Assembly: GCA_965112735.1 (NCBI GenBank)
Contig: OZ218957.1
Span: 2,790,001 to 2,854,000, forward strand
DNA length: 64,000 nucleotides
Direction: 5' to 3'
Source of the DNA: Phaeosaccion multiseriatum
Taxonomy: Eukaryota > Protista > Ochrophyta, other classes
Below the pieces are notes generated by a model. It did not search any database and was not told the origin of the DNA. It saw only the letters and a list, made by a program, of their open reading frames with translations. This document shows positions 10,826-48,299 of this stretch, piece by piece. A program made the position numbers and the translations under genes. Numbering within the stretch: position 1 is the stretch's first letter; each line of letters starts with the position of its first letter.

Positions 10826-10861
<36 letters not shown>

Positions 10862-17787: not shown

Positions 17788-18888
17788 ATGGTGAACGCGA
17801 AGAGAAGGAAGGAGGAGTGCATGGAGGGGCGGGACCAGAAGCAGGACGACAAGCGGCTCCAGCCAGCTCCACCCACTGACTCCTCGGGGGCGGCAAAGCA
17901 TACTTTGCATGGAGGGGTGTCAGCAGCTCCACATCCCGCCGCCCTCGCTGCTGTAAGCGAGGGAAGCAATGTTGAGACTTTCGAAGCTTGCAACGAGACC
18001 CTGGCTCAGGCGGTGCTGCTCGGCGTAGTCATGGGGTGGACTGGTGGGGGCCATGATTTCTTCGTAGCGGCGGTGAGCAAAGAGTGGAAGGGACTCTACA
18101 GGCATCTCTTTCCGGCCAAGACAACGCTTCGCAGGAGGATGGTGGAGTCTGTGGAGCGCTTGAGCTGGGCCAGGAAATACGGGTGTGAGCTGAGTGTCAA
18201 GACGTTTGAAGATGCAGTCCAGTACGGAGATGTGGGTGTCTGCAAGGCTCTTCACAGCATGGGCTGTGCCTGGGATGCGAGAGTGTGTGAGGTTGCTGCG
18301 AGGAATGAGAGGCACGGACTCAGCATCCTCCAGTGGCTGCGGACGGAGGAACTTCCCGGCAAGAAAAGATGCTTGTGGGATGAACAAGTGTGTGACGAAG
18401 CAGCTGGACAGGGGAGGCTGGAGATGCTGGAGTGGATGCTCGCAGAAGAGGCGAATGCGCCATTTAATTACATGCTTTTGGCGGCATCTATTGAGTCGAA
18501 GCGTCTTTGTGTGGTCGAGTGGGTGTTGGAACATCCCAAGGTCAAAGCTCGGATGGAGGTGGCAGGAAAATGCAGCTGGTGGGGGTATGGGCCTGTCTGG
18601 GCGGCCATGCACAGCAATCTCGAAGTGCTGCAATGGTTTCATGCAAACGCACGGGAGCTGTTCAGATGGGGTGAGGATATCTGTGGTGATGCAGTGTATT
18701 CCGCAAAGAGCCTCTCCATGCTGAAATGGCTCCGCTCAGAGGAGGTCATGTGTCCCTGGGACAGGAGGGCATGCCCACACTCTTGGAAAGTCGAATTTGG
18801 TGATGACTGGGATATGCCCCCTGCCGCCTTTGAGGAGATGAAGCAGTGGGTGCATGCCAATGGACACCCCTGCGCCTGCGAGGACTGA
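17788..18888 (+). CDS. Intronless ankyrin-like repeat protein (copy 3), 366 aa
   Basis: Same repeat type (CLWDEQVCDEAAGQGRLEMLEWML), FVAAVSKEWK, and the shared C-terminus MKQWVHANGHPCACED. Confidence 0.8.
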   Translation: MVNAKRRKEECMEGRDQKQDDKRLQPAPPTDSSGAAKHTLHGGVSAAPHPAALAAVSEGSNVETFEACNETLAQAVLLGVVMGWTGGGHDFFVAAVSKEWKGLYRHLFPAKTTLRRRMVESVERLSWARKYGCELSVKTFEDAVQYGDVGVCKALHSMGCAWDARVCEVAARNERHGLSILQWLRTEELPGKKRCLWDEQVCDEAAGQGRLEMLEWMLAEEANAPFNYMLLAASIESKRLCVVEWVLEHPKVKARMEVAGKCSWWGYGPVWAAMHSNLEVLQWFHANARELFRWGEDICGDAVYSAKSLSMLKWLRSEEVMCPWDRRACPHSWKVEFGDDWDMPPAAFEEMKQWVHANGHPCACED

Positions 18889-27149: not shown

Positions 27150-29027
27150 ATGGTTGGGAGTGGGTCTCAGGCTGCGGAAGGTCCTGTCTTGTTGGTGTGT
27201 CCGTGTGTCCGAATACTACATTCGGAGAGCGAAGAGAGACGTTGTGTGTCTTGGCGTCGTGTGTTGCGCGGTGCTCCGGCTCTCATTCAAGAGCTTAGGA
27301 GAGTCATGTACGAGCTGCTTCCGACCTGGGGACCTCGCAAGGATGACAAAGGAAAGGTTGCCGCTGTTAGGGCCGGTTTTTGTACGTGTGCACCCCACGT
27401 CTCTCACCGACCTTCTGCCCTCTCCCTCCTCCCCCCTTTCCCTTTTCTCTCTTCCTCTCTCCTCTCTCTCTATCAATCTATCCATGTTTCGATGTACCTG
27501 CCTCTTTCCCTCCTTACCTCTCCTCTCGTATCTACCTCTCTCCTCCCCCCCTCCTTGGAATCCTTCTTCCCTCCATCCCTCCCTCAGGCTGATATTGTGA
27601 TACTCGTCTCCATTGGGGCTGGCGTCTTCGCTGGCAACCTCTTGCTCGGCCGTGCGGCCGCTCGCCTAAATGATCGGCGCCTCCGGGCAATGCGGGAGGT
27701 GGGCTCTGTCTACACACACGACCTCAGCAACAGGGCCAGGAGCCTGCTAATCAAGTACCGCTACCCGGAGCCCTCCACTTTTCTTGGTTGTGGTGTGCTT
27801 GATACCGATATCGATATCGACATTGAAGGCGCACAGCAGGTTGACGACGAGGACTATGACGAGGTAGAGGAGGAGGAGGAGGAGGAGGAGGGAAGGAATG
27901 GGGTAACGCAGCAAGAGGAGGCAGAGGGGGGGCAGGGAAGACAGGAACTAGGTTCTAATGTTGCCTGCAGCAGCAGTGAGAGGGAGCGAGAACACATGGG
28001 ATTGGGAGGAGGGGGAGGAGGGGGCGCCGATGATGCCGACATGGATGCGGCCGGGGCGTTGCCTGACTCAAGGGAAGCGAACGGGGCGAGGTCTTTGCTG
28101 TCCTGGGGCAACAGGAGGGACAGCACGCGGACAACCAACACGTCTGGTACCTTTCGGAGCTCCTGGCGTAGACGCTTGGGTAAGTGCCGCCCCCGGGCCC
28201 GGAGCAACAGCAGTCGCCCCACGGGCATTAGCTTCTCGCCGCATGGCTCCTTCACAAAGGGCGTACCGACGAAGTACACCGAAGCCAGGCTCGTACGAAG
28301 CGGAGACGAAGGAGGAGGGGGCTGCGGCGAAGACGACCAGGTAGTTGGGCAAAAGCAGCAGCAGCAGCAGCGACACTGTGGCTGCAACAGCACGTCACAC
28401 CCAAGTGAAGAAGAGGACGAGCATGTGTGTATGGAGAGGAGGGGGAGTCTGCATCACTTGGTTGCAGATAAGGATGGGAGGCCAGACAGGCTCAGCCAAG
28501 GTGACGGGGAGATGTGCCTGATCTGCCTCGAACCGTACCAACCGGGGGACGCGCTAGTGATGCTCCCGTGCAGACACGTCTTCCACGAGGCTTGTGCGGA
28601 GAGCTGGTTTGCCTCCCGCAAGACGTGCCCGCTGGACCGGCTTGATCTCAACGTGCTGGCTACGGAGATGGTCGAGGCGGAGAAGAGGGCGGCAGCAGCA
28701 GCGGCCGTAGCGAAGAAGCAGCGGAAGAAGGAGGAGCGAAAGCAGCAGCGCCAGCAGAAGCGGGAGCAGCGGCAGCAGCGGGGCAGGAAGGGACTCACGG
28801 GTCGTTTGGCTCGCAACATGAACAAAGCTCGGCACTGGAGGGGTGGGTGTGGGTCTCGGCGCGCTGTAGTGGCGGAGGGTGTGCCTGTGAGCAGCGGGAG
28901 TGCGCGCAGCACCGCAACGGGCCAGGAGCACTGCGACACCACCACCACCGGCACTGTCATCATGACCAGCCATTCATCCGTTGGGCACCTGCAACCCCAA
29001 TCACCACCAGGAGCAGCAACCGAGTAG
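27150..29027 (+). CDS. Transmembrane RING-H2 protein (putative E3 ligase); probable intron ~27357..27587, 5' end uncertain
   Basis: CLICLEPYQPGDALVMLPCRHVFHEACAESWFASRKTCPLDR (RING-H2 with last ligand Asp); hydrophobic IVILVSIGAGVFAGNLLLG after a pyrimidine-rich acceptor. Confidence 0.75.
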   Translation: MVGSGSQAAEGPVLLVCPCVRILHSESEERRCVSWRRVLRGAPALIQELRRVMYELLPTWGPRKDDKGKVAAVRAGFCTCAPHVSHRPSALSLLPPFPFLSSSLLSLYQSIHVSMYLPLSLLTSPLVSTSLLPPSLESFFPPSLPQADIVILVSIGAGVFAGNLLLGRAAARLNDRRLRAMREVGSVYTHDLSNRARSLLIKYRYPEPSTFLGCGVLDTDIDIDIEGAQQVDDEDYDEVEEEEEEEEGRNGVTQQEEAEGGQGRQELGSNVACSSSEREREHMGLGGGGGGGADDADMDAAGALPDSREANGARSLLSWGNRRDSTRTTNTSGTFRSSWRRRLGKCRPRARSNSSRPTGISFSPHGSFTKGVPTKYTEARLVRSGDEGGGGCGEDDQVVGQKQQQQQRHCGCNSTSHPSEEEDEHVCMERRGSLHHLVADKDGRPDRLSQGDGEMCLICLEPYQPGDALVMLPCRHVFHEACAESWFASRKTCPLDRLDLNVLATEMVEAEKRAAAAAAVAKKQRKKEERKQQRQQKREQRQQRGRKGLTGRLARNMNKARHWRGGCGSRRAVVAEGVPVSSGSARSTATGQEHCDTTTTGTVIMTSHSSVGHLQPQSPPGAATE

Positions 29028-30156: not shown

Positions 30157-33100
30157 CTAACTGCGGTAGGCTCCAAAGCCGTAGCTCTTCCCTTGACCAG
30201 AGGGTGCCGTTGATGATGATGACGACGATAGAACTGGTGACGATGCTACTGCTCCTGCGCTGCTGCTACTAGCTGCGAAGGGGGAATAGCTCGTCACGGG
30301 GGCTGGGGGGGTGGAGGAGGGTGGTGGTGATGATGGTACTGATGCCATTCCTCCTCCGGGGCTGCCACTGCGGTAGGCCCCGAAGCCGTAGCTCGGACTC
30401 GCTCCTCCTGAGCTGCTGGCTCTGCTGCTGATGCTGCTGGCTCCTGGCATAGGGGCAGAGCTCGTCACCGGAGCCGTCGCCGCTCGTGCCACCGGTGCAG
30501 GCGGTGCGACGGCCATTCCTCCTCCAGGGCTGCCGCTGCGGTACGCTCCGAAGCCATAGCTGGGAGACATGCCTCCTGAGCTGCTGCTGCTGCTGCCGCT
30601 GCTGCTGCTGGTGGCTCCCACAGGCGAGTAGCTCGCCATGGGAGCAGACGCTGCTGCCGGTGCTGCTGATCCGGACGACGAAAATGCCACTCCTCCAGGG
30701 CTGCCGCTACGGTAGGCCCCGAAGCCATAACTCCTGCCTCCTCCTCCGCTGGTGCCTCCGACCACAGGCGAGAAGCTTCTCGAGGGAGCTGACGATGATG
30801 GTCCGGAGCTGATGGGGTTGAATCCAAAGCCGGAAGAAGGAGAGCTGGACCCTGCGGATGAGGCTCCTGCTGCGCTGTCGCGGTAGGCTCCGAAGGGTGA
30901 GTAGCTCCTTGTGGCTCCTCCAGCGCCGATGCGGGTCGGTCCGGAAGGCGCAAAGTTCGATGGAGCAGACGATGACCGACCGGAAGGCGATGACGGTGGG
31001 ACGGCCATTCCCCCTCCAGGGCTGCCATCACGGTAGGCTCCAAAGCCGTAGCTGCGAGACATACCTCCTGAGCTGCTGCTGCTGCCGCTGGTGAGGCTGC
31101 TGGCTCCGGCAGAGGAGAAGCTCGACACAGAGGCAGTGGCTGATGGTGAAGATGAGGCGGAGGGCGGTACCGCCATTCCTCCTCCGGGGCTGCCCTCACG
31201 GTACGCCCCAAAGCCGTAGCTGGGAGACTTTCCTCCTGAGCTGCTGCTGCTGGCTCCGACAGGTGAGAAGCTCGTAGGGGGGGCAGCAGTAGAGGCTGCT
31301 GATCCCGAGCTGCTGGGGTTGAAGCCGAAGCCGGAAGAGGGAGAGCCCGTCGCGGATGCGGACGGTGGGACGGCCATTCCTCCTCCAGCGCTGCCGTCGC
31401 GGTAAGCCCCGAAGCCATAGCTCTTAGACATGCCTCCTGAACTGCTGATGCTGCTGCTGCTGGCTCCGACAGGCGAGAAGCTGGACACGGGAGCAGAAGC
31501 AGATGAAGATGCTGCTGGTGACGCGAAGGCGGACGGCGGTACTGCCATTCCTCCTCCAGGGCTGCCCTCACGGTACGCCCCAAAGCCGTAGCTCTTAGAC
31601 ATGCCCCCTGAGCTGCTGCTGGCTCCGACAGGGGAGAAGCTGGTTGGTGCAGAAGTAGCGGTTGCTGGTCCGGAGCTGCTGGGGTTGAATCCAAAGCCGG
31701 AAGAAGGAGAGCTGGTCACTGGGGCAGAGGGTACGACTGCCATTCCTCCTCCAGGGCTGCCGCTGCGGTATGCTCCAAAGCCATAGCTCTTAGACATGCC
31801 TCCTGAACTGCTGACGCTGCTGCTGCTGGCTCCGACAGGCGAGAAGCTGGACACGGGAGCAGAAGCAGATGAAGATGTTGCTGGTGGCGCGAAGGCGGAC
31901 GGCGGTACTGCCATTCCTCCTCCAATGCTGCCGTCACGATAGGCCCCGAAGCCGTAGCTCTTAGACATGCCTCCTGAGCTGCTACTGCTGGCTCCGACAG
32001 GGGAGAAGCTTGTAGGGGCAGAAGTACCGGTTGCTGGTCCGGAGCTGCTGGGGTTGAAGCCGAAGCCGGAAGAAGGAGAGCTGGTCACTGGGGCAGATGG
32101 TACGACTGCCATTCCTCCTCCAGGGCTGCCGCTGCGGTATGCTCCAAAGCCATAGCTCTTAGACATTCCACCGGAGCTGCTGCTGCCGCTGCTAAAGCTG
32201 CTTGCGCCAGGAGGCGAGTAGCTCGTCACGGGAGTGGGAGGAGCAGAAGGAGACGCTGCTGATGACGCAAAGGCGGACGGCGATGAGGCCATTCCTCCAG
32301 GGCTTCCTCCAGCAGGGTCGTCACGGTAGGCCCCGAAGCCATAGCTCAAGTAGTTCATGCCGCCTGCGCTACTACTGCTGCTGCTGCTGGCTCCGACAGA
32401 CGAGAAGCTCACGGGAGCGGACGCTGCTGGCGCGGCGGATCCGGACGGCGCGGATGTGGACGGTGGGACGGCCATTCCTCCTCCGGGGCTGCCGCTGCGG
32501 TAGGCACCGAAGCCATAGCTCTTAGACATGCCTCCTGAGCTGCTGCTGGTTCCGACAGGGGAGAAGCTGGTTGGAGCAGAAGTAGAAGCTGCCGGTCCCG
32601 AGCTGCTGGGGTTGAAGCCAAAGCCGGAAGAGGGGGAGCTAGGCGCTGACGCGGACGGTGCGACGGCCATACCTCCTCCAGGGCTGCCGCTGCGGTAGGC
32701 CCCGAAGCCATAGCTCTTAGACATTCCTCCTCCTCCTCCGCTGCTGGCTCCGGCAGGCGAGAAGCTCGTCACTGGGGCAAAAGCGGATGCTGCTGCTGGC
32801 GCGGCGGATCCGGACGGTGCGGATGCGGACGGTGGTGGGACGGCCATTCCTCCTCCGGGGCTGCCGCTGCGGTAGGCACCGAAGCCATAGCTCTTAGACA
32901 TGCCTCCTGAGCTGCTGCTGCTGGTTCCGAGAGGGGAGAAGCTTGTGGGGGCAGAAGTAGAGGTTGCTGGTCCGGAGCTGCTGGGGTTGAATCCGAAGCC
33001 GGAAGAAGGGGAGCTGGGCGCTGAGGCTGACGGCGACGCCATTCCTCCTCCAGGGCTGCCCTCACGGTAGGCCCCAAAGCCATAGCTGGGAGACATTCCT

Positions 33101-36100
33101 CCGGAGCTGCTGCTGCTGCTACTACTGCTGCCGCCAGGAGGCGAGTAGCTCGTGACGGGAGTAGAAGCAGACGCTGCTGCTGGTGAAGATGAGGCGGAAG
33201 GCGGTACTGCCATTCCTCCTCCCGGGCTGCCCGCACGGTAGGCCCCGAAGCCGTAGCTGGGCGACTTTCCACCTGAGCTGCTGCTGCTGCTGCCGCTGCT
33301 GAAGCTGCTGGCTCCGGCAGAGGAGAAGCTCGACACAGGAACAGTCACTGGTGATGGCACTGACGAGGATGGTGGAACGGCCATTCCTCCTCCAATGCTT
33401 CCGTCGCGGTAAGCTCCAAAGCCATAGCTCTTAGACATGCCTCCTGAGCTGCTGCTGGTTCCGACAGGCGAGAAGCTTGTTGGGGCAGAAGTAGAGGTTG
33501 CTGGTCCGGAGCTGCTGGGGTTGAAGCCGAAGCCGGAAGAAGGAGAGCTGGGCGCTGAGGCTGACGGCGACGCCATTCCTCCTCCAGGGCTGCCCTCACG
33601 GTAGGCCCCAAAGCCATAGCTGGGAGACATTCCTCCGGAGCTGCTGCTGCTGCTACTACTGCTGCCGCCAGGAGGCGAGTAGCTCGTGACGGGAGTAGAA
33701 GCAGACGCTGCTGCTGGTGAAGATGAGGCGGAAGGCGGTACTGCCATTCCTCCTCCCGGGCTGCCCGCACGGTAGGCCCCGAAGCCGTAGCTGGGCGACT
33801 TTCCACCTGAGCTGCTGCTGCTGCTGCCGCTGCTGAAGCTGCTGGCTCCGGCAGAGGAGAAGCTCGACACAGGAACAGTCACTGGTGATGGCACTGACGA
33901 GGATGGTGGAACGGCCATTCCTCCTCCAATGCTTCCGTCGCGGTAAGCTCCAAAGCCATAGCTCTTAGACATGCCTCCTGAGCTGCTGCTGGTTCCGACA
34001 GGCGAGAAGCTTGTTGGGGCAGAAGTAGAGGTTGCTGGTCCGGAGCTGCTGGGGTTGAAGCCGAAGCCGGAAGAAGGAGAGCTGGGCGCTGAGGCTGACG
34101 GCGACGCCATTCCTCCTCCAGGGCTGCCCTCACGGTAGGCCCCAAAGCCATAGCTGGGAGACATTCCTCCGGAGCTGCTGCTGCTGCTACTACTGCTGCC
34201 GCCAGGAGGCGAGTAGCTCGTGACGGGAGTAGAAGCAGACGCTGCTGCTGGTGAAGATGAGGCGGAAGGCGGTACTGCCATTCCTCCTCCCGGGCTGCCC
34301 GCACGGTAGGCCCCGAAGCCGTAGCTGGGCGACTTTCCACCTGAGCTGCTGCTGCTGCTGCCGCTGCTGAAGCTGCTGGCTCCGGCAGGCGAGAAGCTCG
34401 ACACAGGAACAGTCACTGGTGATGGCATTGACGAGGATGGTGGAACGGCCATTCCTCCTCCAATGCTTCCGTCGCGGTAAGCTCCAAAGCCATAGCTCTT
34501 AGACATGCCTCCTGAGCTGCTGCTGGTTCCGAGAGGGGAGAAGCTTGTGGGGGCAGAAGTGGAGGTTGCTGGTCCGGAGCTGCTGGGGTTGAATCCAAAG
34601 CCGGAAGAAGGGGAGCTGGGCGCTGAGGCTGACGGCGATGCCATTCCTCCTCCAGGGCTGCCCTCACGGTAGGCCCCAAAGCCATAGCTGGGAGACATTC
34701 CACCTGAGCTGCTGCTGCTGCTGCTGCTGCTGCTGCCGCCAGGAGGCGAGTAGCTCGTGACGGGAGTAGAAGCAGACGCTGCTGATGAAGATGAGGCGGA
34801 AGGCGGTGATGCCATTCCTCCTCCAGGGCTGCCCTCACGGTAGGCGCCAAAGCCGTAGCTGGGAGACACTCCACCTGAGCTGCTGCTGCTGCTGCTGGTG
34901 CCGCTGCTGAAGCTGCTGGCGCCAGGAGGCGAGTAGCTCGTCACAGGGACAGTTGCTACTGATGGCATTGAAGAGGTGGGCGCTGATGCCATTCCTCCTC
35001 CAATGCTGCCGTCACGATAGGCCCCGAAGCCGTAGCTCTTAGACATGCCTCCTGAGCTGCTACTGCTGGCTCCGACAGGGGAGAAGCTGGTTGGTGCAGA
35101 AGTAGCGGTTGCTGGTCCGGAGCTGCTGGGGTTGAATCCAAAGCCGGAAGAAGGAGAGCTGGTCACTGGGGCAGAGGGTACGACTGCCATTCCTCCTCCA
35201 GGGCTGCCGTCGCGGTAGGCTCCAAAGCCATAGCTCTTAGACATGCCTCCTGTGACGCTGACAGCAGGGGAGTAGCTCCTGACCACAACAGGCGCTGCTG
35301 GTGAAGATGAAGCGGCCGGTGGGGATGCCATTCCCCCTCCGGGGCTGCCATCGCGGTAGGCTCCAAAGCCATAGCTGGGAGATGCTCCTCCTGAGCTGCT
35401 GCTGCCGCTGCTGCTGATGCTACCGCCGCTGGCTGCGACAGACGAGAAGCTCGACACGGGAGCAGGCGCGGAGGGTGACGCAAAGGCAGAGGGCGATGAG
35501 GCCACTCCTCCGGGGCTGCCGTCGCGGTAGGCTCCGAAGCCGTAGCTCTTAGACATGCCTCCTGAGGTGCTGCCTCCGACAGGTGAGAAGCTCGCCACGG
35601 GAGCAGACGTAGAGGCTGCTGGTCCGGAGCTGCTGGGGTTGAAGCCGAAGCCGGAAGAGGGGGAGCTAGGTGCTGATGCCATTCCTCCAGAGCTTCCTCC
35701 AGCAGGCTCGTTGCGGTAGGCTCCAAAGCCGAAGTCTGTAAAGCGGGAAGGGCTCTTGTTCATGATCGAGTAGCTCGTCACAGGGACGCCAGTCAGTGGT
35801 GACACTGGCGCTTTTGCTGCGGGTGCGGATGCCATTCCTCCTCCAGGGCTGCCCTCTCGGTAGGCTCCAAAGCCGTAGTTCGTAGACATGCCTCCTGAGG
35901 AGCTGCTGCTGCTGCCGCCGCTGATGAAGCTGCTCGTGCTGCTGCTGGCTCCGGGAGACGAGAAGCTCGATACAGGGGCAGTGGCTGATGAGGAAGATGA
36001 GGAGGAGGGCGGCACTGCCATTCCTCCTCCGGGGCTGCCCTTGCGGTAGGCCCCGAAGCCATAATCGATCGACATTCCTTCTGCTGCTGCCGCTGCGCTG

Positions 36101-39100
36101 CTACTACTGCTGCTGCTACCGCTGCCGTATCCCGAAGGAGAGTAGGCAGAAGGTACTGCCATTCCGCCTCCGGGGCTGCCGCTGCGGTAGGCCCCGAAAC
36201 CGTAGTCAACCGACGCACCTCCTGGGCTGCTGCTGCTGGCTCCGCCAGGCGAGAAGCTCGTTGGGGCAGAAGTAGAGGCTGCTGGTCCGGAGCTGCTGGG
36301 GTTGAAGCCGAAGCCGGAAGAAGGGGAGCTAGGTGCTGATGCCATTCCTCCTCCAGAGTTTCCTCCAGCAGGCTCGTTGCGGTAGGCGCCAAAGCCGAAG
36401 TCTGTAAAGCGGGAAGGGCTCTTGTTCATGATCGAGTAGCTCGTCACAGGTGTGCCTGTCAGTGGCGAAATTGGCGCTGATGCGGGCGGTGCGACGGCCA
36501 TTCCTCCTCCAATGCTGCCGTCGCGGTAGGCTCCAAAGCCGTAGTTCGTAGACATGCCTCCTGAGGAGCTGCTGCTGCTGCTGCCGCCGCCGCTGGTGAA
36601 GCTGCTCGTGCTGCTGCTGGCTCCGGGAGACGAGAAGCTCGATACAGGGGCAGTGGCCGATGAGGAAGATGAGGAGGAGGGCGGTACTGCCATTCCTCCT
36701 CCGGGGCTGCCCTTGCGGTAGGCCCCAAAGCCATAATCGATCGACATTCCTTCTGCTGCTGCCGCGCTGCTACCGCTGCTGCTGCCGTATCCCGAAGGGG
36801 AGTAGGCGGACGCCGACGCCGACGCCATTCCTCCTCCGGGGCTGCCGCTGCGGTAAGCTCCGAAGCCGTAATCGGCCGACATTCCTCCTGAGCTGCTGCT
36901 GCTACTGCTGCTGCTGGCTCCGGCGGACGAGAAGCTCGACACTGGAGCGGGTGCTGAGGGTGACGCAAAGGCAGAGGGCGACGAGGCCATTCCTCCTCCA
37001 GAGCTTCCTCCAGCAGGCTCGTTGCGGTAGGCGCCAAAGCCGTAGTCTGCGAAGCGGGAAGGGCTCTTGTTCATGATGGAGTAGCTCGTCACAGGTGTGC
37101 CTGTCAGTGGTGACACTGGCGCTTTTGCTGCTGGTGCGGATGCCATTCCTCCTCCAGGGCTGCCCTCTCGGTAGGCTCCAAAGCCGTAGCTCGGAGACAT
37201 GCCTCCTGAGCTGCTGCCACTCGCCCCAACAGGGGAGGAGAAGCTTGTCTTGGGAGCAGAAGTAGACGCTGCTGCTGCTGCTGGTGGTGGTGGTGGTGGC
37301 GTGGCGGGGTTGAATCCGAAGCCGTTAGACGAGCTGGTCACTGGAGCTGAGACTTGTGCCATTCCTCCTCCAGGGCTGCCGCTGCGGTATGCTCCAAAGC
37401 CGTAGTCTGCTGTGGCTGCGGATCCAGAGGGGGATGTCGCCATTCCTCCAGGGCTGTTGCCGCCGCTGCTGGCACGGTGATCTCCTCCAAAGGGGGAGTA
37501 GCTCTTCTTCATTCCTCCTCCGCTGCTGCTGCTGGCTCCCGCAGGCGCGAAGCTCGGCACGGGAGCAGAAGTAGTAGCTGCTGGGCTCGAGCTGCTGGGG
37601 TTGAATCCGAAACCATTAGAAGAAGAGCTCGTCGCTGGTGCTGAGGGTGGTGCTGATGCCATTCCTCCTCCAGGGCTGCCGCTGCGGTATGCTCCAAAGC
37701 CGTAGCTCGGAGACGCTCCACCTGAGCTGCTGCTGCTGCTCGCGCTGCTGCTGCTGCCTCCACTGGTGAAGCTGCTCGTGCTGCTGCTGCTGGCTCCGGG
37801 AGACGAGACGCTCGACACAGGGGCAGTGGCCGATGAGGAAGATGAGGAGGACGGCGGTACTGCCATTCCTCCTCCGGGGCTGCCCTTGCGGTAGGCCCCG
37901 AAGCCGTAGTCTGCGAAGCGGGAAGGGCTGTCCTTGTTGTTGTTCATAATCGAGTAGCTCGTCACAGGGGCGCCGGTCACGGGTGACACTGCCGCTGTTG
38001 CGGGCGGTGCGACGGCCATTCCTCCTCCGATGCTGCCGTCACGGTAGGCTCCAAAGCCGTAGCTCGGAGACGCTCCTCCTGAGCTGCTGCTGCTGCTGCT
38101 GCTGCTGCTGGCTCCGGGAGACGAGAAGCTCGATACAGGGGCAGTGGACGATGAGGAAGATGAGGAGGAGGGCGGTACTGCCATTCCTCCTCCGGGGCTG
38201 CCCTTGCGGTAGGCCCCAAAGCCATAATCGATCGACATTCCTTCTGCTGCTGCGCTGCTGCTGCCGCCGCCGTATCCGGAAGGCGTGTAGCTCGCGGACG
38301 ACACGGCCGGCGAGGCCATTCCTCCTCCAGGGCTGCCCTCACGGTACGCCCCAAACCCATAGCTGGGAGACGCTCCTCCTCCGCTGCTGCCGGTGCTACT
38401 GCTGCTGCCACTGCTGGCTCCGGCAGGCGAGAAGCTCACCTTGGGAGCAAACGCCGCCGGTGAGGAAGAGGAGGCGGAGGGCGGTACTGCCATTCCTCCT
38501 CCAGGGCTGCCCTCACGGTAGGCCCCAAAGCCATAGCTCGGCGACATTCCTCCTGAGCTGCTGCTGCTGCTACTGCTGCTGGCTCCGGCGGACGAGAAGC
38601 TCGACACGGGAGCGGGTGCTGAGGATGAAGAGAAAGCGGACGGCGCTGATGCCATTCCTCCTCCAGAGCTTCCTCCAGCAGGCTCGTTGCGGTAGGCGCC
38701 AAAGCCGTAGTCTGCGAAGCGGGAAGGGCTCTTGTTCATGATGGAGTAGCTCGTCACAGGTGTGCCTGTCAGTGGCGACACTGCTGACTCGCTGCGGTAG
38801 GCCCCGAAGCCATAGCTCCTCGTTCCTGAGCTGCTGGTACTGGTGCTGCTGAAGCCGCTAGGGGAAAAGCTGGTCCTTGGGGCGGGCGGAGCTGCTGCTG
38901 CCACTGGTGCTGGTGCGAACGCCGCTCCTCCAGAGGGGGGGCTGCCGTTGCGGTAGGCTCCGAAGCCGTAGTCTCCAAAGCGGGAAGGGCTGTCCTTGTT
39001 GTTGTTCATAATCGAGTAGCTCGTCACAGGGGCGCCGGTCACTGGCGACACTGCTGCCGTTGCGGGTGGCATCAGTGACATGCCTCCAATGCTGCCGCTG

Positions 39101-42100
39101 CGGTAGGCCCCGAAGCCGTAGCTCACAGGCGCTGAGCTGCTGCTGCTGCTGGTGCTGACAGTAGTTGTTGCTGGGGGGGTGGAAGGGTTGAATCCAAAGC
39201 CGGAAGAAGCGGAAGTCGGTGGTGGGGGTGATGCCATTCCTCCTCCGGGGCTGCCGCTGCGGTGGTCACCCCACGGAGCGTAGCTCTTACCCGCCCCTCC
39301 TGCGCTGCCAGCTGCTGCTGCTGCGCCACTTGCGCTTGCTCCTGCTCCTGCTCCGCCAACGGGAGTGTAGCTGACAGCGGGGGGAGGCGGTGCTGACACA
39401 GGTGCTGATTTGATCGAAACGGTGCTGGTGCTGGTGGTACCCGTGCTGCTGGTGGTGCTGGTGGAGTGGTCACCGCCGAAACGGGCATAGCTCCTCGCCA
39501 TGTCTCCCGCACTGCTCTGGTAGGCGCCGATGGGAGGAGAAGGGGGGCTCACCGGAGCCGGGGGCGCTGGAGACACGGGGGCGGAGGGTTCCACTTCCAC
39601 TCGGCCAGGGCTGCTGCTCCGATGATCTCCTCCGAAGCGCGAGTAGCTCTTGCCGGTAGGAGCGCCGTTGCTCGAGGGTGCAGCTGCTGCTGGCTGCTGG
39701 TGATGAAGCGGTGGTGCCACACCTCCGGAGCTGGCGCGGCTGTCCTTGTAAGGAGAGTAGCTGGTCACGGGCGCCGTGGCTGGAGGCGCTTGCTGCTGCT
39801 GGGGTGGCGGTGCCTGCGGTCGTGGCGGGGCTTGAGGTCGTGGTGCGCGTACCGCAGGCGTGATGCCTGAAACGGTGCCGAAGTCTCCAAAGGCGGGTTG
39901 GCTGCGAGTACGGCTCGAAGACGACTGATTTCCGCTGCCGGCGTTGTTGGCGCCACGGTCATCACCAAAGAAGGCGTTGCGCGTCAAGACCTTGTTGTGG
40001 GAGGTGCGGTAGGCGCCGAAGGAGGAGTAGCTCCTGACGATGACGGGCGGCTCGCCCGAGGGAGGGCCGGAGCGGTAGTCACCGAATCGTGAGTAGCTCT
40101 TGCTTGCAGGAGGGGCGGGCGCGGGGGCGACAGGTGCCGTGGTGGGTGTGCTGCCTCCTGCTCCGCTGTCGCGATTGAATCCGAAGGGCGGGGGTGAGCT
40201 GCTCGCTGGTGCCGCCGGTGGTGGCGGTGGCGGTGAGGACGACGATACCGGGCGGCTGTAGTCACCGAAGCGACTGTAGCTCTTCTTGGCAGGAGGAGAT
40301 GCGGGTGGTGGGGCTTGCGCCTGGGGGGGGGGCGGGGGAGGGGGCGCTGCTCTTCCTGCTGGTGGTGGTGGTGGGGGCGCTCTCGCTCCTCCTCCTCCTC
40401 CGGGGCTGCTGCGGTAGTCGCCGAAGCGGCTGTAGCTCTTGGGAGGTGGGCTAGGTGCTTGGGCTGGGGGCATCGGTGGTGCTCCTGCTGCTGACGCGCC
40501 CTGAGGAGCGGCGTTACCACCGCCGAAGAAGGCGCCGGAGCCGACGGGAGGACGTTGAACAGGTGCTGCCCTGACGGGTGCCGCAGGTCGAGCTTGAGGT
40601 GGGGGCGGAGGCCTTGCGGCAGGGGGGGCTTGGGGTCGTGCAGATGAGCCGGTGGGGCCGCGGTAGGCTCCGAAGGGAGAATAGCTCTTGCGCCCCTGCT
40701 GCTGCTGCTGCTGCTGCTGTTGCTGTTGCTGCTGCTGTTGCTGTGCTGCCCGCTGCTGTTGCTGCATTGCTGCTGCTGCTGCTGCCTGTGCCTGGCCTCC
40801 CTGCTGGGGTGGCCTTGCTACCTGTCCTCCCTGCTGGGGCGGCTGCTGCTGCATGCGTGCTTGTGGCGGTTGGGGGGCGCCGGGGGGGGCTCTGGGGGGG
40901 GCGTTGGCGGCCGCAGCCTGCCTGAGCTGCTGCTGCTGCCGCTCCAGCTGCTGCTGCTGCTGAAGCACCAACTGCTGCTGCTCCTGGTAACTGCTCTCGG
41001 TGTCGAACTGAGGAGTGGGGAAAGAGTGGAGGTGGGGTGGGGAGGGGAGGGGAGGGAGGGCAGGAGAGGAGAGGACGGAGAGGGTGAGTGAAATTGGTAT
41101 TCGACGTTTCGTTCGCGCGTGGAGCACGGTGTACATGCACAAACACGCACGCGCACTACACAAGCCGCTCGACATTTACGTCATAAATCGAGGCAAGCAG
41201 GAAGTCATGGCAGAAGGAGGAGGGCATGCGCACCCACACACACACAGAGACAGAGGCTGACAAGTGCAGGAGGAGTAGAGTATGCATGCACACACACACA
41301 CAGAGACAGAGAGAGACGGAGGTTGACAAGTGCAGGAGGAGTAGAGTATGCATGCACACACACACACACACATGTAACACAAGAGAAATAGCCCCCCTTG
41401 CATTGCGTGCACTCCTCCTTCTGCACTCCTCCTTGCCTCAACATGACGTCCAAGAGCAGAAGGAAGAGGACACGCACGCACACACACACACACGCAACAC
41501 GAGAGACAAAAGGAATAGATCCCCCCGCTTGTGTGGCATGTGTGTGTGTGTAAATGTGCATGCCCTCCTCCTCCTGCCCCACCCACGCATCATGTCGGAG
41601 AGCGCAGAAGGGAGGTGCAGCCAGCCCAACCCAACCCAACCGCCATCACATCTCAACCCCCTCCCTCCTCAGTGTACTAACCTTTGATGCTTGCTGTGCG
41701 GCGAAGAGGGCCACAGCCCCGGCTCCTACACCGAGCTCCACCTTGTTGTCCTCAACGAACGCGCCCACGTCGCCACCTCCGGCGTCCTTCCACACCTTCT
41801 GGATGGTGGTGGAGAACATGGTATTGATCTCGTCACTGCCATCGCCAACCTGCTGCATTGCCTTACTGCCTGCTTGCTGCACCGCCTCGCTGCCTGCTTG
41901 CATGGCGTCGCTGCCTGCTTCCTGCATGTACTCGGTGCCTGCTTCCTGCATAGCCTCGCTGCCTGCCTGCATGGCGTCGGTGCCGGCTTGCTGCATGGCC
42001 TGTGTCGTCTGCTGCACGGCCTCTGTGGCTGCTGAAGTCGCTGACCCGGCACTCTGCATCGCATCTACCGCTACGTCCGCCGACTGCGTCTGCACCACAT

Positions 42101-43322
42101 CCACTACTGCCTCCACCGTCTCTGTAACGGCGGGGACGGCGTTGCTTGCTGCTGCTGTTACTGCTGTCACCGCATTTACCGCTGCCTCGGCCACCTCTGG
42201 GATGGCGTCGGGAGGAGGCGCTGAGGAGGCCGCTGTTGACGCTGCTGCTGCTGCCGCCGCTGCCGCCGCTGCTGCTCCTGCTGCTACTGCTGGAACACTG
42301 GAGGGCTTCTTGGGCTCCAACACCACACCGTACGGAGTTGTACCCCCCACTGCTTTCTCGAACATTACCTCCTTCAGCTTGGGTTCTCGCGGACCCGGTG
42401 CAGGTGCCTCGACCACCTTGGCCGGGACAGGGGCAGGCTCAGGCTTTGGCACAGGCGCAGGCGCCTCCACCTTCTTGACCTGCTGCACCTCCGGCTCTGC
42501 TGCCGTTGTAGGAGCGGCCGCCTTTGCTGGAGGCACAGTCAGAGGCAAGCCGGAAGAGTGATGATCCACCACGGCCCAGCCCGAGTCCATGAGCGGATCT
42601 TGCCGGTAGGTGAAGCTGTACCGCGCGTCCCCCACCGTGCGATCTGTTTCGCCAGGGGACACCCACGAGTAGGAGTAGTAGCCCGTGTTGATGGCCACCG
42701 TGTTGGTAATCATGCGCGCATTTGGCCGGTTGTTGGACAGCTGCAGCTCGGGCAGCTTGGCAAAGAAGGTCAAGTAGTCCAAAATCTCCTTGGGCGTGGT
42801 GCGCATCTCCTCCGGGCCCCACAGCACCGCATCCTTCCCATACAACTTGGCCGCCTGCTGAGCAGCGTCCTTCTCCCCCGACCCCAGCGTCCTCAACCAT
42901 TCGTCCGTGGCAGACAGCACGCCATCCAGCTTGGTGGGGGCCGGCGCTGCGGCTGTCCCTTCCTCCCCCCCCTCCTCTGCACGTGCCGCGGCTGCTTGCA
43001 GTCCCGCCATGCCCGCAAATGCGGCCGCCGCTGCCCCCCGCACGCTAAGTTCAAACGCCTCCAGCACCGACTCCCTAGTCACGCTACCCCCCCCCCTGGC
43101 GGCCATCTCCGCCGCGCTCTCTGACTCCCATACCTCCCTCCCCGTCCCCTTGAGCACTCCCGGTGTTCCCTGCTGCGAGCGCGTACTGCCAGACACCAAC
43201 CGCCCTCGAAAAGGAGCTCCAGACACTAAACGAGAGGTGGGCAACTGAAAGGCTTGCACACTACTTGTGCCGGCGAAGCCCGCCACCGCGGCAAAGCCGC
43301 AGCAGTAGCTAGGCACCCTCAT
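30157..43322 (-). CDS. Giant (~4160 aa) plastid-targeted iota-carbonic-anhydrase-domain / YGFGAYR-repeat protein; exons 41682..43322 and 30157..41007
   Basis: Donor AAG|gttagt at 41682/41681 and acceptor ccccactcctcag|TTC at 41008/41007 are both phase 0. Signal peptide plus VQA|FQL. COG4875-like domain (LYGKDAVLW..R.TP.EI.DY..FF..INTGYYSY..ARYSFTY..WAVVDHHSSGLP). The 10.85-kb second exon is uninterrupted and has ~50 [YF]GFGAYR motifs. Confidence 0.8.
32870..35000 (-). repeat. Near-perfect 534-bp (178-aa) coding tandem repeat, ~3.5-4 units, inside the giant exon
   Basis: Sequence at 33301 recurs at 33835. Alternative-frame ORFs at 33345, 33879 and 34413 are offset by exactly 534, and the first two translate identically. 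Confidence 0.9.
42545..42930 (-). other. Iota-class carbonic anhydrase-like (SnoaL/CaMKII association-domain fold) domain within the giant gene
   Basis: Diagnostic ARYSFTY and HHSSxxP motifs of COG4875/LCIP63-type proteins. Confidence 0.82.
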
Positions 43323-43977: not shown

Positions 43978-46063
43978 CCCAGACAAACACTGACAAGAAA
44001 CACACAAACACACACACGACAAATAAACACACAGGTACAGACACCACGCATTTGCACAGCCCGCGCGCACACACACACACACACGCGGGGCGCGGCACTT
44101 GTCTCACTTACCCTTGCACACACGCGCGCGGCACTTGCCTCACTTACCCTTAAAGAGCTCCGCCCGATTGAGAGCAGCACCGTGGACTTGACAGCACACA
44201 TGGTCCAAGGCGTTGCGCCGTCTCCATTACCGCCCGTCCCATCGACGGCAGAGTGCACGTGTGTGGCAGAGAGGAGAACATCCTGCAAAGAGGAGAGGGC
44301 AGTTTGCCCACCATAGTCCACCGCGCCTCGTCTGCAGACTCTCTCCCACTCTTTGCTTGCTCATGGTGCTCATGGTCGCTGCAACCAAGTCGATACCGTG
44401 ATAGCTCACTATCTCCGCCAGAGGCAGGGCCTTGCCGCAAGCCTCACGCGTCTCGATACTCCGGCACTTGCACCACCTCTTTGACGCCAAGTCCGGTTAG
44501 TCGAGCGTAGCATAGCCTCGGGGGGGGGCGAGCTGGAGCCTTCTCGCCACCCTCCTTTCGGTCCCGCCCCCTCCCCCTTTACGCCCTGTGAAGCGATGGC
44601 GCTGCCCGCTGACATTCAGATAGGGCTGCTGAGATGTTTATTGAAACCTCGGGGAAGGGAGTGAATGGGGCGTTCTTCCTCCTCCATTTTTCCCTATTCT
44701 TCCTTAAATGAGGGACGGTCGGAGGACTGAGAAAAGGAAGGACAGTAGAGGGAAAAGGAGAAGCAGCAGTACAGGACCACCTCAGAAAGGTAGAGTACTT
44801 CGGGGGGGGGGGGGAGTGTATACTAACCTCCTGCACCAGTCTTCTTGTGACTTGTTATTTTCAAATTTCAAATACACATCACCAGCTGGTGATCTTGAGA
44901 CGTTGGTGATTCGCTCACACAGCGTTACTTTTGGACAACCATAGATGGCATTAGGAGTGCGATCCATCTTCGCGCGGGAGATTTGGCGTAGGACACTCGC
45001 AGGCACTCACTGCGTCCCTTTGCTTCGCTCGGAGGAGATTGGCGTGTCTTTGGAATAAACCCAGGGGCGGTCATCAGTGGATATTGCTGTTAGGCAGCAC
45101 AGATGGCACCAAACCAAAGGGTGAAGGGTGAAGGAGCAGGATGGCACCAAATGAATCCACACACCCCTCTTCTCTTCGTGCGAAGTATGCTGGACCAAAG
45201 GAGCTCTGTCCTGTCCCCGCTCCTTTCTGCCCTCCCCTTCTGACGCGGCACAAAAAGCCTTGGCACTCTTCCATCACCATGACTTCACTTCACTTCAGTG
45301 CACTTCGTGCCATCCATGCCAAGCTGCCGGAGCACTCTCATCTGTTCCCAAAATACCACAGCCCTGCTGCTCTGGCTGCTGCTGCTGCTGCTGCTCGAGA
45401 GCGGCCACACAGTAAAGTGAAACGCTCACTGAGCGACAGCCCCTCCCTCCCTCCCTCCCTTACTCACTCACTCACCCTCTCCTCTTTCTTCAAAATTGTG
45501 CGCAGCCCCCACCGCCCGCCCCGCCGCGCCTCCCTCCTGTACAATATTGCAAGACAGGGCGTTATCCTCACTCCTGTCTGTGTGTCTGCCTGTCCACCTG
45601 TGTGTGTGTGGCGTGGTGTTGTCTGGCTGGCCACCTCCTCGTCAACAGAGGGAAGGTCGCGCCAAATGCGCAAAGCGGGTGGGGAAGACAGGCGGGTACG
45701 GTATACCACCAGTGGCAGCAATCCGCGGTGGCACTGGTCCATCTCCCTCCCTCCCTCCCTCTTTCTCTCTCTCCCTCTCTGAAATGGAAGGAAGGCTACG
45801 GAGGCCTACAGACCACATTCTTGGCTCCGCACCGTGCCTCTTCTAACCACAACTCTCTCTCTCTCTTGTCCCTTTCGTTCCCACTCCCCTCTTCATATGC
45901 CTCTCGTCTCCCTTTCCCCTCACAACCACACCCCCAACCCAAGTCCCCCATATGCCTACGCCGCCCCGCTTTGGCAGTCTCTTCTTCGCTCTGCCATACC
46001 TCTCTCCCTCCCTCTCTTCCTCTCCTCTGCCCCATCCACTGCCATCCCCTCTCTGTCTGTCTC

Positions 46064-48299
46064 TCAGCCCTGCATCTGTGCATACTCCTTGAGAATGCTG
46101 CTGGCAATGACCAGATGCTGCACCTCGGATGTGCCCTCGTATATCTGACAGTAGAGACATATAGGGAGAGAAGAGGCGTATGGGTGGGGAGGGTAGGGGA
46201 GGGAGAGTACAGGCGTATGGGTGGGGAGGGCAGAGGAGAGAGAGTAGAGGCGTATGGGTGGGGAGGGTAGAGGAGAGTGAGTAGAGGCGTATGGGTGGGG
46301 AGGGTAGAGGAGAGAGTAGAGGCGTATGGGTGGGGAGGGTAGAGGAGAGAGTGAGTACAGGCGTATGGGTGGGGAGGGTAGAGGAGAGAGAGTAGAGGCG
46401 TATGGGTGGGGAGGGCAGAGGAGAGAGAGAGTAGAGGCGTATGGGTGGGGAGGGTAGAGAAGAGAGAGAGTAGAGGCGTATGGGTGGGGAGGGCAGAGGA
46501 GAGAGTAGAGGCGTATGGGTGGGGAGGGCAGAGGAGAGAGAGAGTAGAGGCGTATGGGTGGGGAGGGTAGAGGAGAGAGAGTAGAGGCGTATGGGTGTGG
46601 AGGGCAGAGGAGAGAGAGTAGAGGCGTATGGGTGGGGAGGGTAGAGGAGAGAGAGTAGAGGCGTATGGGTGGGGAGGGTAGAGGAGAGTGAGTAGAGGCG
46701 TATGGGTGGGGAGGGTAGAGGAGAGAGAGTAGAGGCGTATGGGTGGGGAGGGTAGAGGAGAGAGAGTAGAGGCGTATGGGTGTGGAGGGCAGAGGAGAGA
46801 GAGTAGAGGCGTATGGGTGGGGAGGGTAGAGGAGAGAGAGTAGAGGCGTATGGGTGGGGAGGGTAGAGGAGAGTGAGTAGAGGCGTATGGGTGGGGAGGG
46901 TAGAGGAGAGAGAGTAGAGGCGTATGGGTGGGGAGGGTAGAGGAGAGAGAGAGTACAGGCGTATGGGTGGGGAGGGTAGGGGAGGGAGAGTAGAGGCGTA
47001 TGGGTGGGGAGGGTAGAGGAGAGAGAGGAGAGGCGTATGGGTAGGGAGGGCAGAGGAGAGAGAGTAGAAGCGTATGGGTGGGGAGGGCAGAGGAGAGAGA
47101 GAGTAGAGGCGTATGGGTGGGGAGGGTAGAGGAGAGAGAGAGTAGAGGCGTATGGGTGGGGAGGGTAGAGGAGAGAGAGAGTAGAGGCGTATGGGTGGGG
47201 AGGGAAGAGGAGAGAGTAGAGGCGTATGGGTGGGGAGGGCAGAGGAGAGAGAGTAGAGGCGTATGGGTGGGGAGAGCAGAGGAGAGAGAGAGTAGAGGCG
47301 TATGGGTGGGGAGGGTAGAGGAGAGAGAGAGAGTAGAGGCGTATGGGTGGGGAGGGCAGAGGAGAGAGAGTAGAGGCGTATGGGTGGGGAGGGCAGAGGA
47401 GAGAGAGTAGAGGCGTATGGGTGGGGAGGGTAGAGAAGAGAGAGTAGAGGCGTAAGGGTGGGGAGGGCAGAGGAGAGAGAGTAGAGGCGTATGGGTGGGG
47501 AGGGTAGAGAAGAGAGAGAGTAGAGGCGTAAGGGTGGGGAGGGCAGAGGAGAGAGAGTAGAGGCGTATGGGTGGGGAGGGTAGAGAAGAGAGAGAGAGTA
47601 GAGGCGTATGGGTGGGGAGGGTAGAGGAGAGAGCGTAGAGGCGTACGGTGAGGATCAGGAGAAGCGGCACGGCACGGCTCGCATGAGAGGTGCAAAACGC
47701 AGTAAGAGTCGGGGAGAGACGAGGGAGGCCTGATTGGGTGTACCTCAGTAAACCCCACAAACTACACACGCAGCAGGCAAGGCCCCAACGGTTACCATCA
47801 CTTCGGAGGTTCCAACAGAGAGCGCATCAGGTGACGGAGAGGCGCAGATGCGAACCGCTTCCCTCTCATTCTCCTCTCCCCTCCACTCCCTTCCTTTGTC
47901 ATCTCTCCTCCCCTCCCCTCTCTCCTGTCCTCTCCTCTCTGCAGTAACGTACCTCTGTAATTCGAGCGTCGCGGTAGTGCCTCTCCGCCGGCATCTCAGT
48001 CACGTAACCCTGTGGGATGGGGTGAAAGGGTGTGCGATGGTGTGTAAACAAGTGTGCACAAGGTACAGCAGTGGTAGTGGGGTGGAAACGGTGTGTCGCG
48101 GTGATACACTAAGAGGGTGTAGGCGTTGAGATATTGTACAGGGCCCCTCCCTCCCTCCCTCCCTCCCTCCCTGATCCTCTCCCAAAGCCAACGCACCATT
48201 CCCCCCAGGACTTGTATGGCTTGGTGCGAGCAGAACGTAGCGGCCTGCAAAGAAGAACGAAGCGATTCACAGAGACCAAGACGCAGCAGTAGTAGGAGT

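Follow-up and report, generated by a model that had tools for sequence, protein, structure and literature searches.

A giant predicted protein of Phaeosaccion multiseriatum with a carbonic-anhydrase-like domain and 51 copies of an aromatic-arginine motif

A 64,000-nucleotide stretch of the Phaeosaccion multiseriatum genome (GenBank assembly GCA_965112735.1, contig OZ218957.1, positions 2,790,001 to 2,854,000; hereafter the window, whose own numbering is used throughout) holds on its minus strand a single open exon of 3,616 codons, 30157-41007, in which the heptapeptide [YF]GFGAYR, here called the sticker, recurs 51 times. The conservation of this sticker is due to purifying selection and not to recent copying. 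The exon is probably the tail-encoding last exon of a two-exon gene, the first exon of which encodes an N-terminus that looks like a bipartite plastid presequence and, by homology, a domain of the iota-carbonic-anhydrase (iota-CA) type. Our leading, though tentative, reading is that the product would be a plastid sticker-spacer scaffold, forming a low-mobility condensate in which the CA-like head is kept. The repeat period, the design of a sticker followed by a Gly run, a motif grammar like that of the diatom linker PYCO1, and a head of the type known from CO2-concentrating mechanisms (CCMs) make Rubisco its most plausible client. Disordered multivalent linkers are a known kind of protein; what is new here is the sequence, the valency (51 versus 4-6), the size and the fusion to a CA-like domain.

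Repeat array and selection on the sticker

A mechanical open reading frame (ORF) call extends the tail exon to an ATG at 41175 (30157-41175, minus strand), a frame that stays open over 3,672 codons. A script run on its translation counted 51 exact [YF]GFGAYR copies, 49 with Tyr and two with Phe at the first position, with a median spacing of 57.5 amino acids (aa), a mean of 59.6 aa and a range of 35-107 aa. A preliminary description of the same sequence had put the count at about 51 and the spacing at about 55-60 aa, and both figures held. FGAYR alone occurred 54 times and the looser pattern FG[AGD][YD][RH] 60 times, leaving nine variants beyond the exact copies where about ten had been estimated, among them the KSYSPFGAYR, KSYSRFGDYR and KSYSRFGGDHR forms. 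The further elements that had been listed were also recovered, with 33 exact GSPGGGMA followers (46 in the relaxed form G[SI][PIA]GG), 31 S[YF]SP and 15 GFGFNP. Ser (27.6%), Gly (16.3%), Ala (13.4%) and Pro (12.8%) together made up 70% of the translation. As had been described, the protein ends on its own motif: the C-terminal sticker (30157..30183, minus strand) reads YGFGAYR plus Ser within the terminal GKSYGFGAYRS and is followed directly by TAG, beyond which the sequence becomes AT-richer and resembles an untranslated region.

The regular array occupies residues 1169-4163 (30160..39144, minus strand) and consists of 51 units. Alignment of 41 of the 51 listed units (a 56-position profile) yielded a consensus that opens with S-S-G-G-M-S-[KP]-S-YGFGAYR-x-GSPGGGMA and continues through an Ala/Pro/Ser spacer to A-P-V-[TS]-S-[FY]-S-P-x-G-A and a Ser run. 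Nine columns were invariant in all 41 units, namely the G, F, G, A, Y and R of the sticker, the next G, and two G of the follower. The first half of the array is built on a higher-order repeat of four units, SYSIMNKSPSRF[AT]D[YF]GFGAYRNEPAGG units among them, and the second half on two- and three-unit repeats. An extra SSPSSGFGFNPSSSGPA insert was present in 14 of the 51 units; 14 of the 15 GFGFNP elements lie inside the array, the 15th belonging to the degenerate region upstream. That region, the start of exon 2 (residues 548-1168; 39145..41007, minus strand), is Gln-rich and then Pro-rich, with an isoelectric point (pI) of 10.9 and a net charge of +29. Its eight degenerate stickers follow the pattern [KR]SY[SA]x[FW]G..[RH]: KSYSPFGAYR, KSYSRFGDYR (twice), KSYSRFGDYSR, RSYSSFGAYR, KSYSRFGGDHR, RSYARFGGDH and KSYAPWGDHR. 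Array and degenerate copies together define an extended sticker, [KRP]-S-Y-(G or S[PR])-F-G-[AD]-Y-R.

The codons that specify the sticker are thoroughly mixed. Tyr was encoded by TAC (25) and TAT (24), Phe by TTT (30) and TTC (21), Gly by GGG (25), GGA (20), GGC (4) and GGT (2), and Arg by CGC (31), CGT (18) and CGA (2), and all four Ala codons were used. In pairwise comparison of the 41 aligned units, the seven sticker columns differed synonymously in 10-63% of pairs (mean, ~39%) and nonsynonymously in none, except for 10% at the Y/F position, whereas columns just outside the sticker differed nonsynonymously in 40-80% of pairs. The earlier observation that the motif stays invariant as the spacers drift is thus borne out at the codon level. 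Because gene conversion would homogenize silent sites too, yet these differ, the conservation of the sticker is purifying selection. The same analysis indicates that the GS-GGGMA follower is also under purifying selection, and the mid-unit S-[FY]-S element more weakly. The array itself is old, with a single recent duplication block: the youngest expansion identified by copy comparison is a 534-bp (178-aa, three-unit) higher-order repeat present three times at 33085..34686 (minus strand), in which copies B and C were 100% identical and copy A was 97.9% identical, differing at 11 nucleotides (8 synonymous, 3 nonsynonymous); the copy number within this block may be affected by assembly, and the true number may differ. 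Outside it, no 300-nucleotide window exceeded 90% nucleotide identity at any lag tested (57-356 aa).

The tail is strongly basic, with a pI of 9.90 (9.58 for the whole protein) and a net charge of +85, and its aromatic residues number 302 and its Arg 108 (57 of these within the motif), with a single Trp and no Cys. The preliminary description had proposed a disorder prediction; an AlphaFold2 (AF2) model of one unit, for which the 41 paralogous units served as alignment, reached a mean predicted local distance difference test (pLDDT) score of 57 and a predicted TM score (pTM) of 0.14 with no secondary-structure element, and DSSP assigned just a three-residue helical turn at positions 13-15, inside the motif. 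The tail is thus basic and predicted to be disordered. The FLIPPer approach, a homology-independent route by which CsLinker and SUPA1 were found, looks for at least three repeats, a largely disordered chain, a pI above 8 and a repeat spacing of 20-120 residues (PMC11570498), and a period of ~60 aa is expected of linkers. Here 51 exact motifs stand against the three demanded, the spacing (median 57.5, range 35-107) falls inside the prescribed interval, disorder follows from the AF2 model and the 70% S+G+A+P content, and both the tail and the whole protein lie above the pI limit. The valency is, as had been claimed, far above that of known linkers (51 versus 4-6). Taken together, the observations support the anatomy of a multivalent sticker-spacer scaffold.

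The repeat appeared isolated in every collection that was searched. A profile of the 41 units found zero matches among 1.84 billion representative proteins; at 56 positions, a single-copy relative could score below threshold, and a multi-copy relative should have scored. In a scan of JGI metagenomes, the pattern [SF]x[SD]YGFGAYR gave five matches, none of which was confirmed. The unit profile and a 356-aa stretch met chance-level matches only in the PDB, Pfam recognized no domain in the repeats, and FGAYR, GFGFNP, SYGFGA and GSPGGGMA had no relevant mention in about 8.4 million full-text papers. Two word-indexed homology searches, one with tail residues 1800-3000 and one with the exon-1 protein, gave nothing at E ≤ 1e-3 among at most 8,000 candidates each, a weak result, as low-complexity words probably swamped the candidates.

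Gene model, N-terminus and carbonic-anhydrase-like head

The tail exon is probably the second and last of a gene that runs on the minus strand as 43322..41682 plus 41007..30157. The upstream exon (41682-43322) is an ORF opened by the ATG at 43322 that reaches an AAG|GTTAGT donor (41682/41681) and would meet a stop 11 codons further on. The putative intron of 674 nucleotides (41008..41681, minus strand) is of the GT-AG type and phase 0 on both sides, and has a (GT)n/(CA)n-rich body and a long polypyrimidine tract before its CAG acceptor; its GC content is 0.56, versus 0.64 in the flanking exons. Base 41007, with which the preliminary description had bounded the tail, is the first exon base after this polypyrimidine tract and CAG, and the first 56 codons of the mechanical ORF, from ATG 41175, form a CT-rich tract that closes with CAG at 41008. 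Gln/Ala richness runs on across the junction, and the joined coding sequence, a multiple of 3 in length, has its only stop at the end and would encode 4,163 aa (~395 kDa). Tracts rich in (GT)n/(CA)n recur upstream of the gene (43980-44110), apparently a genome-wide microsatellite habit.

Within exon 1, codons 1-24 (43251..43322, minus strand) resemble an endoplasmic reticulum (ER)-type signal peptide, MRVPSYCCGFAAVAGFAGTSSVQA, composed of MR, an uncharged hydrophobic stretch and the c-region TSSVQA, with a Kyte-Doolittle (KD) hydropathy peak of 1.73 over 12 residues and V and A at positions -3 and -1. It is followed at codons 25-62 (43137..43250, minus strand) by a transit-peptide-like stretch of 38 residues, F-QLPTSRLVSGAPFRGRLVSGSTRSQQGTPGVLKGTGR, with five R, one K, nine S/T and no D/E, which places Phe at +1 (VQA|FQLP). 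Plastid proteins of haptophytes, ochrophytes and dinoflagellates are recognized by a signal peptide followed by a transit peptide with an aromatic first residue (PMC8132391). The N-terminus thus looks like a bipartite plastid presequence that fits the red complex-plastid rule. A transmembrane anchor in exon 1 was considered and rejected, as only a poly-Ala run exceeded a KD value of 1.6.

Codons 124-262 (42537..42953, minus strand) are predicted to form an NTF2-like fold of the CaMKII association domain (CaMKII-AD) and iota-CA type. The segment matched PDB entry 3H51 (a 'putative CaMKII association domain') with a phmmer E value of 2e-9 and an LCIP63-like three-domain protein, P0001, with E 1.6e-25. 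Its AF2 model (pLDDT, 77) is an alpha+beta NTF2-like barrel, the best Foldseek match of which is again 3H51 (E 3.7e-10; TM, 0.64/0.73). The segment VDHHSSGLP aligns with the HHSS of all comparators, and the head retains W, LY, Y, ARY-F-Y and W at conserved positions. Diatom iota-CAs of the LCIP63 type consist of CaMKII-AD domains with an (H)HHSS motif and are low-CO2-induced chloroplast CCM proteins that form high-mass multimers (PMC6776030), and 3H51 is itself 38-42% identical to proven iota-CAs (PMC8132391). By this homology, the head is an iota-CA-like domain, of uncertain activity. The plastid context at which the preliminary description had guessed gains from finding a presequence-like N-terminus and an iota-CA-like domain in the same predicted gene.

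The closest relative of the head that was found is P0001 (34% identity), encoded at 71-1399 of a 2,861-bp Logan contig (ERR2041015; locus L001), which has a signal peptide and three tandem CaMKII-AD/HHSS domains. The NCBIfam name of its family, 'SgcJ/EcaC family oxidoreductase', conflicts with the carbonic-anhydrase literature. A second metagenome scan, made with the CA-like domain, yielded 77 head homologs with 26-36% identity, mostly on contigs whose names look bacterial or soil-type, and none of the 77 had an FGAYR-type tail; eight 'FGAYR' strings in their loci were rejected as antisense-frame artifacts of the conserved ARY.F.Y segment. The head (42537-42953) lacks the Thr of a segment (LLPT/LWGT) that is invariant elsewhere and, with HHSS and the conserved Tyr kept, may be a non-catalytic or mechanistically divergent member of the family.

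Between the CA-like domain and the basic tail lie a Pro/Ala/Lys-rich linker, a 12-residue poly-Ala run and then acidic (D/E)AMQ(E/Q)AG short repeats at codons 415-500 (41823..42080, minus strand), for which Tandem Repeats Finder reported periods of 24, 45 and 69 at 41851-42000. Exon 1 has a pI of 4.7 and the tail one of 9.9, opposite charges that could pair electrostatically, within or between molecules.

A possible plastid scaffold, its rivals and the genomic surroundings

In the mechanism that we favor tentatively, the N-terminus would send the protein through the ER into a complex plastid, where the mature form would bear one iota-CA-like NTF2 domain with putative catalysis. Behind this head would follow the basic tail, predicted to be disordered, in which the ~17-residue sticker [KP]S-YGFGAYR-x-GSPGGGMA recurs 51 times at ~57-aa intervals, with PV[TS]S[FY]SP and GFGFNP as two further aromatic elements between stickers. 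Tyr/Phe and Arg stickers set in Gly/Ser/Ala/Pro spacers could make many weak contacts among themselves and with a client that is oligomeric and symmetric, for which Rubisco is the most plausible candidate. The product would be a low-mobility condensate or gel, that is, the pyrenoid matrix or a layer on it. Such a condensate would hold the CA-like head beside the carboxylase, functionally like the cyanobacterial CcmM, which joins a CA domain to Rubisco-binding repeats, and the diatom PYCO1.

Several points weigh against this mechanism. The signal and transit peptides were assigned by inspection, the splice junction was placed from sequence features, Rubisco binding is plausible by inference, and a pyrenoid and red-type Rubisco in the source organism are assumed. 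Both localized algal proteins of this CA type, LCIP63 (PMC6776030) and Bn86287 (PMC8132391), reside at the stromal periphery, outside the pyrenoid. The activity of the head is uncertain because the Thr of LLPT/LWGT is lost (the head reads LWG--PEEM, the Thr column being a two-residue deletion), because Pfam gave just DUF4440, at 20.3 bits under a cutoff of 25.2, and no PF08332, and because NCBIfam gave no match. We take DUF4440 to belong to the same NTF2-like superfamily, and a Thr at the corresponding site is essential only in the related COG4337 enzymes. In the tail, the single Trp lies outside the regular array, the repeats of which have none of this residue, critical in the PYCO1 and EPYC1 stickers, and the AF2 unit model contains no helix of four or more residues, on the motif or elsewhere, and no strand of three or more; the PYCO1 sticker is also a short linear motif, helical only once bound. 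A valency of 51 and a mass of ~395 kDa are roughly ten times those of proven linkers, and a secreted structural protein could also show about 30% Ser with Pro/Ala/Gly after a signal peptide. Finally, no relatives were found in the searches described above to show that the architecture is conserved. The linkers and candidates PYCO1, AaPPAP28 and EPYC1 are all species- or clade-specific, and a lack of relatives is itself typical of linkers.

The localization of LCIP63 and Bn86287 outside the pyrenoid lends weight to an alternative that we rate as unlikely, in which the protein would enter the plastid without binding Rubisco, and a gel or layer made by its self-associating tail would keep the head in place, at the stromal periphery or round the pyrenoid, serving CO2 recapture or as a diffusion barrier. 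PYCO1 demixes by itself through aromatic stickers, and the 302 aromatics and 108 Arg in Gly/Ser-rich spacers would suit such behavior. The 57-aa period and the sticker-plus-Gly-run design, however, match linkers that bridge Rubisco, and the strictly invariant heptamer with its conserved eight-residue follower suggests a defined binding site, because generic stickiness tolerates exchange among Tyr, Phe and Trp, which only one position does here. The signal-peptide-like N-terminus raises another option, a secretory protein of the surface, scale, wall or mucilage, glycosylated or Tyr-cross-linked, that would serve as a structural, elastomeric or adhesive polymer displaying an external CA. A content of about 30% Ser, along with Pro, Ala and Gly, would suit this, as would the rapid evolution of the tandem array and the very large size of the protein, and the repeat resembles motifs of resilin (SYGAPGGGN) and abductin (GGFGGMGGG). 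The bacterial homologs of the head are, moreover, predicted to be periplasmic or extracellular (PMC8132391). We nevertheless think a secreted polymer improbable. Phe at +1 followed by 38 acid-free residues with six basic ones is what marks proteins of red-derived complex plastids and not secreted proteins. Cys is absent from the tail, as are any domain for anchoring or wall binding and any transmembrane or GPI-like terminus, and Asn sequons are few, the Asn of GFGFNPS preceding Pro.

Two other explanations would detach the tail from the head or from function altogether. The junction was predicted from sequence alone, an ATG at 41175 opens the tail frame, FG-type dipeptides are abundant (YGFG, GFGFNP) and the spacers carry few charges, so exon 2 could be a separate gene whose low-complexity product acts in the cytosol or nucleus, for instance as a granule scaffold of the FG-nucleoporin-like or prion-like type. 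We consider this quite improbable, since the 56 codons after that ATG look like a standard 3' splice region, the upstream ORF runs into a consensus donor shortly before its stop, the phases match, Gln/Ala richness spans the junction, and a ~57-aa period with a basic sticker is unlike FG-nucleoporin repeats. Very improbable is a non-functional frame running open through a GC-rich minisatellite, or an assembly artifact. Two of the 534-bp copies are indeed 100% identical and the window holds other satellites, but across 10,851 nucleotides the coding frame meets no stop but the terminal one, versus 43-144 stops in the other five frames, sticker variation is synonymous-only, and most units are less than 90% identical in nucleotides to their neighbors.

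A bolder form of the favored Rubisco-scaffold reading, which we regard as doubtful, would make the protein a eukaryotic counterpart of CcmM, one ~395-kDa plastid polypeptide with an iota-type CA-like head and a 51-valent Tyr/Phe-Arg sticker array, in which the array would be the Rubisco-condensing matrix protein of a red-lineage pyrenoid. Its array might even share an ancestral repeat with the diatom PYCO1, diverged beyond detection. CA and linker would then be supplied at a constant ratio, in a matrix with the consistency of a near-solid gel. To our knowledge, covalent coupling of a CA to a Rubisco condensate has so far been described only from bacterial carboxysomes.

Pyrenoids account for roughly a third of the CO2 fixed worldwide, and Rubisco-condensing linkers are known from few species, each of them lineage-specific (EPYC1, CsLinker, SUPA1, PYCO1 and hornwort RbcS-STAR). 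Most red-plastid algae have no known linker, and none has been identified even in the centric diatom T. pseudonana. The present protein offers a concrete candidate with about ten times the valency of any proven linker, in which selection on the sticker can be demonstrated within one gene copy. If the scaffold reading is right, it would point to convergence or deep homology among PYCO1-type stickers across lineages, add a new short peptide that binds red-type Rubisco, and help to explain how the material properties of condensates depend on valency; if the protein is a secreted polymer instead, it would still represent an unreported repeat family with a CA head.

Elsewhere in the window, a topoisomerase II gene was found in ORF pieces at 2941-12395 (minus strand), with DNA_topoisoIV at 2941-5607 and 5698-6666, a weak HATPase_c at 11451-12395, and a C-terminal piece with an acidic BSP-like low-complexity tail; because this gene is split into several pieces, the genome is intron-containing and eukaryotic. 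A RING-H2 finger ORF of 625 aa (27150-29027, plus strand) is convergent with the giant gene, an RPE65/carotenoid-oxygenase domain ORF lies at 57420-59264 (plus strand), and two ankyrin-repeat ORFs occupy opposite strands at 16567-18888; none of these neighbors has an obvious functional link to the giant gene. At 46166-47645 there is a 37-bp minisatellite of ~39 copies (92% match), strongly purine-rich on the plus strand (GC skew, 0.60 in the 46-48 kb bin), which produces a spurious 657-codon minus-strand ORF with no Pfam match. A scan of the window found no tRNA or Rfam family.

Comparison with known linkers and carbonic anhydrases

PYCO1 of Phaeodactylum tricornutum is the sole proven linker for red-type Rubisco, a protein of ~80-aa repeats with a pI of 10.0, prion-like composition and no homologs outside P. 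tricornutum (PMC10288592). Its KWSPRGGS sticker binds RbcS as a tetrad, each Trp docking on the GGS of a neighboring sticker; its GTGYNP element self-associates in a Tyr-dependent manner, and PYCO1 demixes alone via aromatic stickers. In the published supplement sequence, the order within a repeat is [ST]YSSMPG, KNYSMVKWSPRGGS and GTGYNP, or more fully AP[ST]YSSMPGQ...GSGPxKNYSMVKWSP[RQ]GGS, a Gly/Ser-rich stretch, GTGYNPAQ and an Ala/Ser-rich stretch. The present protein reads PVTS[YF]SPxG, a Ser run, GGMSKSYGFGAYRxGSPGGGMA...SSGFGFNPSSSGPA..., with GFGFNP third. Both proteins thus show three motif classes in the same cyclic order, namely [ST]YS..PG, a basic-aromatic sticker with a Gly run, and G-x-G-[YF]-N-P. 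The stickers have a comparable skeleton, K-x-Y-x-hydrophobic-x-x-aromatic (with Tyr as 0, the hydrophobic residue falls at +2 and the aromatic at +5), with Arg and a following Gly-Gly-Ser/Gly run, and G-x-G-Ar-N-P lies 21 residues from the sticker aromatic in PYCO1 and 22 in the present protein. PYCO1 has a bipartite plastid presequence, which the N-terminus here resembles, and the two are alike in short linear stickers in place of folded domains, and in basic (pI ~10), Ser/Gly/Ala/Pro-rich, Met-containing, prion-like tandem repeats.

The differences are nonetheless considerable. The critical Trp of PYCO1 is replaced by Tyr/Phe, and the elements of KWSP[RQ] are rearranged (K, aromatic, S-P, R, GG run). 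PYCO1 has 6 units of ~80 aa in 592 aa, versus 51 of ~57-66 aa in 4,163 aa, and its C-terminal RbcL motif of the AAEWGSMNQ type is absent here, where a CA-like head is fused on instead. In formal comparison, hhalign of one PYCO1 repeat against the 41-unit alignment gave E 0.17 with a probability of 0.4%, and Smith-Waterman scores reached z 0.57-1.43 against 500 composition-matched shuffles. Membership in a PYCO1 family was rejected as unsupported by these tests despite the shared motif order, and the fit of the 15 GFGFNP elements to the G-x-G-aromatic-N-P pattern of GTGYNP is a six-residue match that cannot establish homology. Because the alignment tests fail, we speak of a shared grammar and not of family membership, a resemblance that is suggestive and was noticed post hoc. 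The analogy with KWSP and PYCO1 drawn in the preliminary description is in this respect closer than had been noted, with the same three motif classes in the same order, and falls short in the missing Trp and the hhalign result.

Like EPYC1, CsLinker and SUPA1, the tail is basic and predicted to be disordered, with ~40-60-aa repeats that carry an aromatic or basic sticker. Unlike here, where none is predicted, the stickers of those linkers are predicted or observed alpha-helices, a further point against a Rubisco linker; they number 5-6 versus 51, are unrelated in sequence and accompany no enzymatic domain. Identity with Ulva SUPA1 was rejected, SUPA1 being a protein of 291 aa with helical repeats. 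Several Chlamydomonas pyrenoid proteins reportedly carry their motif near the C-terminal end, as does the present one. AaPPAP28, a chlorarachniophyte candidate linker of 2,209 aa with 90 short [D/E]-x-P-K-S repeats (PMC10927497), is likewise a very large, mostly disordered, species-specific plastid protein with dozens of short repeats and no homologs even in close relatives; its repeats, unlike those described here, are spaced by ~6 residues, are confined to mid-protein and have neither an aromatic sticker nor a CA domain. Membership among the FG-nucleoporins does not fit the presequence-like N-terminus, the CA-like domain, the lack of a Pfam nucleoporin domain and a basic sticker every ~57 aa.

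For the head, the closest known proteins are the LCIP63-type iota-CAs, which share its fold, HHSS and the conserved W/LY/Y/ARY-F-Y/W positions and have a plastid presequence, as the present protein may. They differ in having 2-4 domains in diatoms versus one, in an identity of 27-34% and in retaining the LLPT Thr, and no known member has a giant repeat tail. PtCA1, a carbonic anhydrase inside the diatom pyrenoid matrix, offers a precedent for the location. The coupling of a CA to Rubisco-binding elements has its parallel in carboxysomes: CcmM of beta-carboxysomes joins a gamma-CA domain to folded SSUL repeats, and CsoSCA of alpha-carboxysomes a beta-type CA to one disordered peptide. The present protein may couple a CA-like domain to such elements in a comparable way, the role of its stickers being putative. 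It differs in an iota-type NTF2 head, in short linear motifs within a 3,600-aa disordered tail, and in being eukaryotic and predicted to be plastid-targeted. With an NTF2 fold in the head and repeats that match no Pfam or PDB domain, it would be at most an analog of CcmM.

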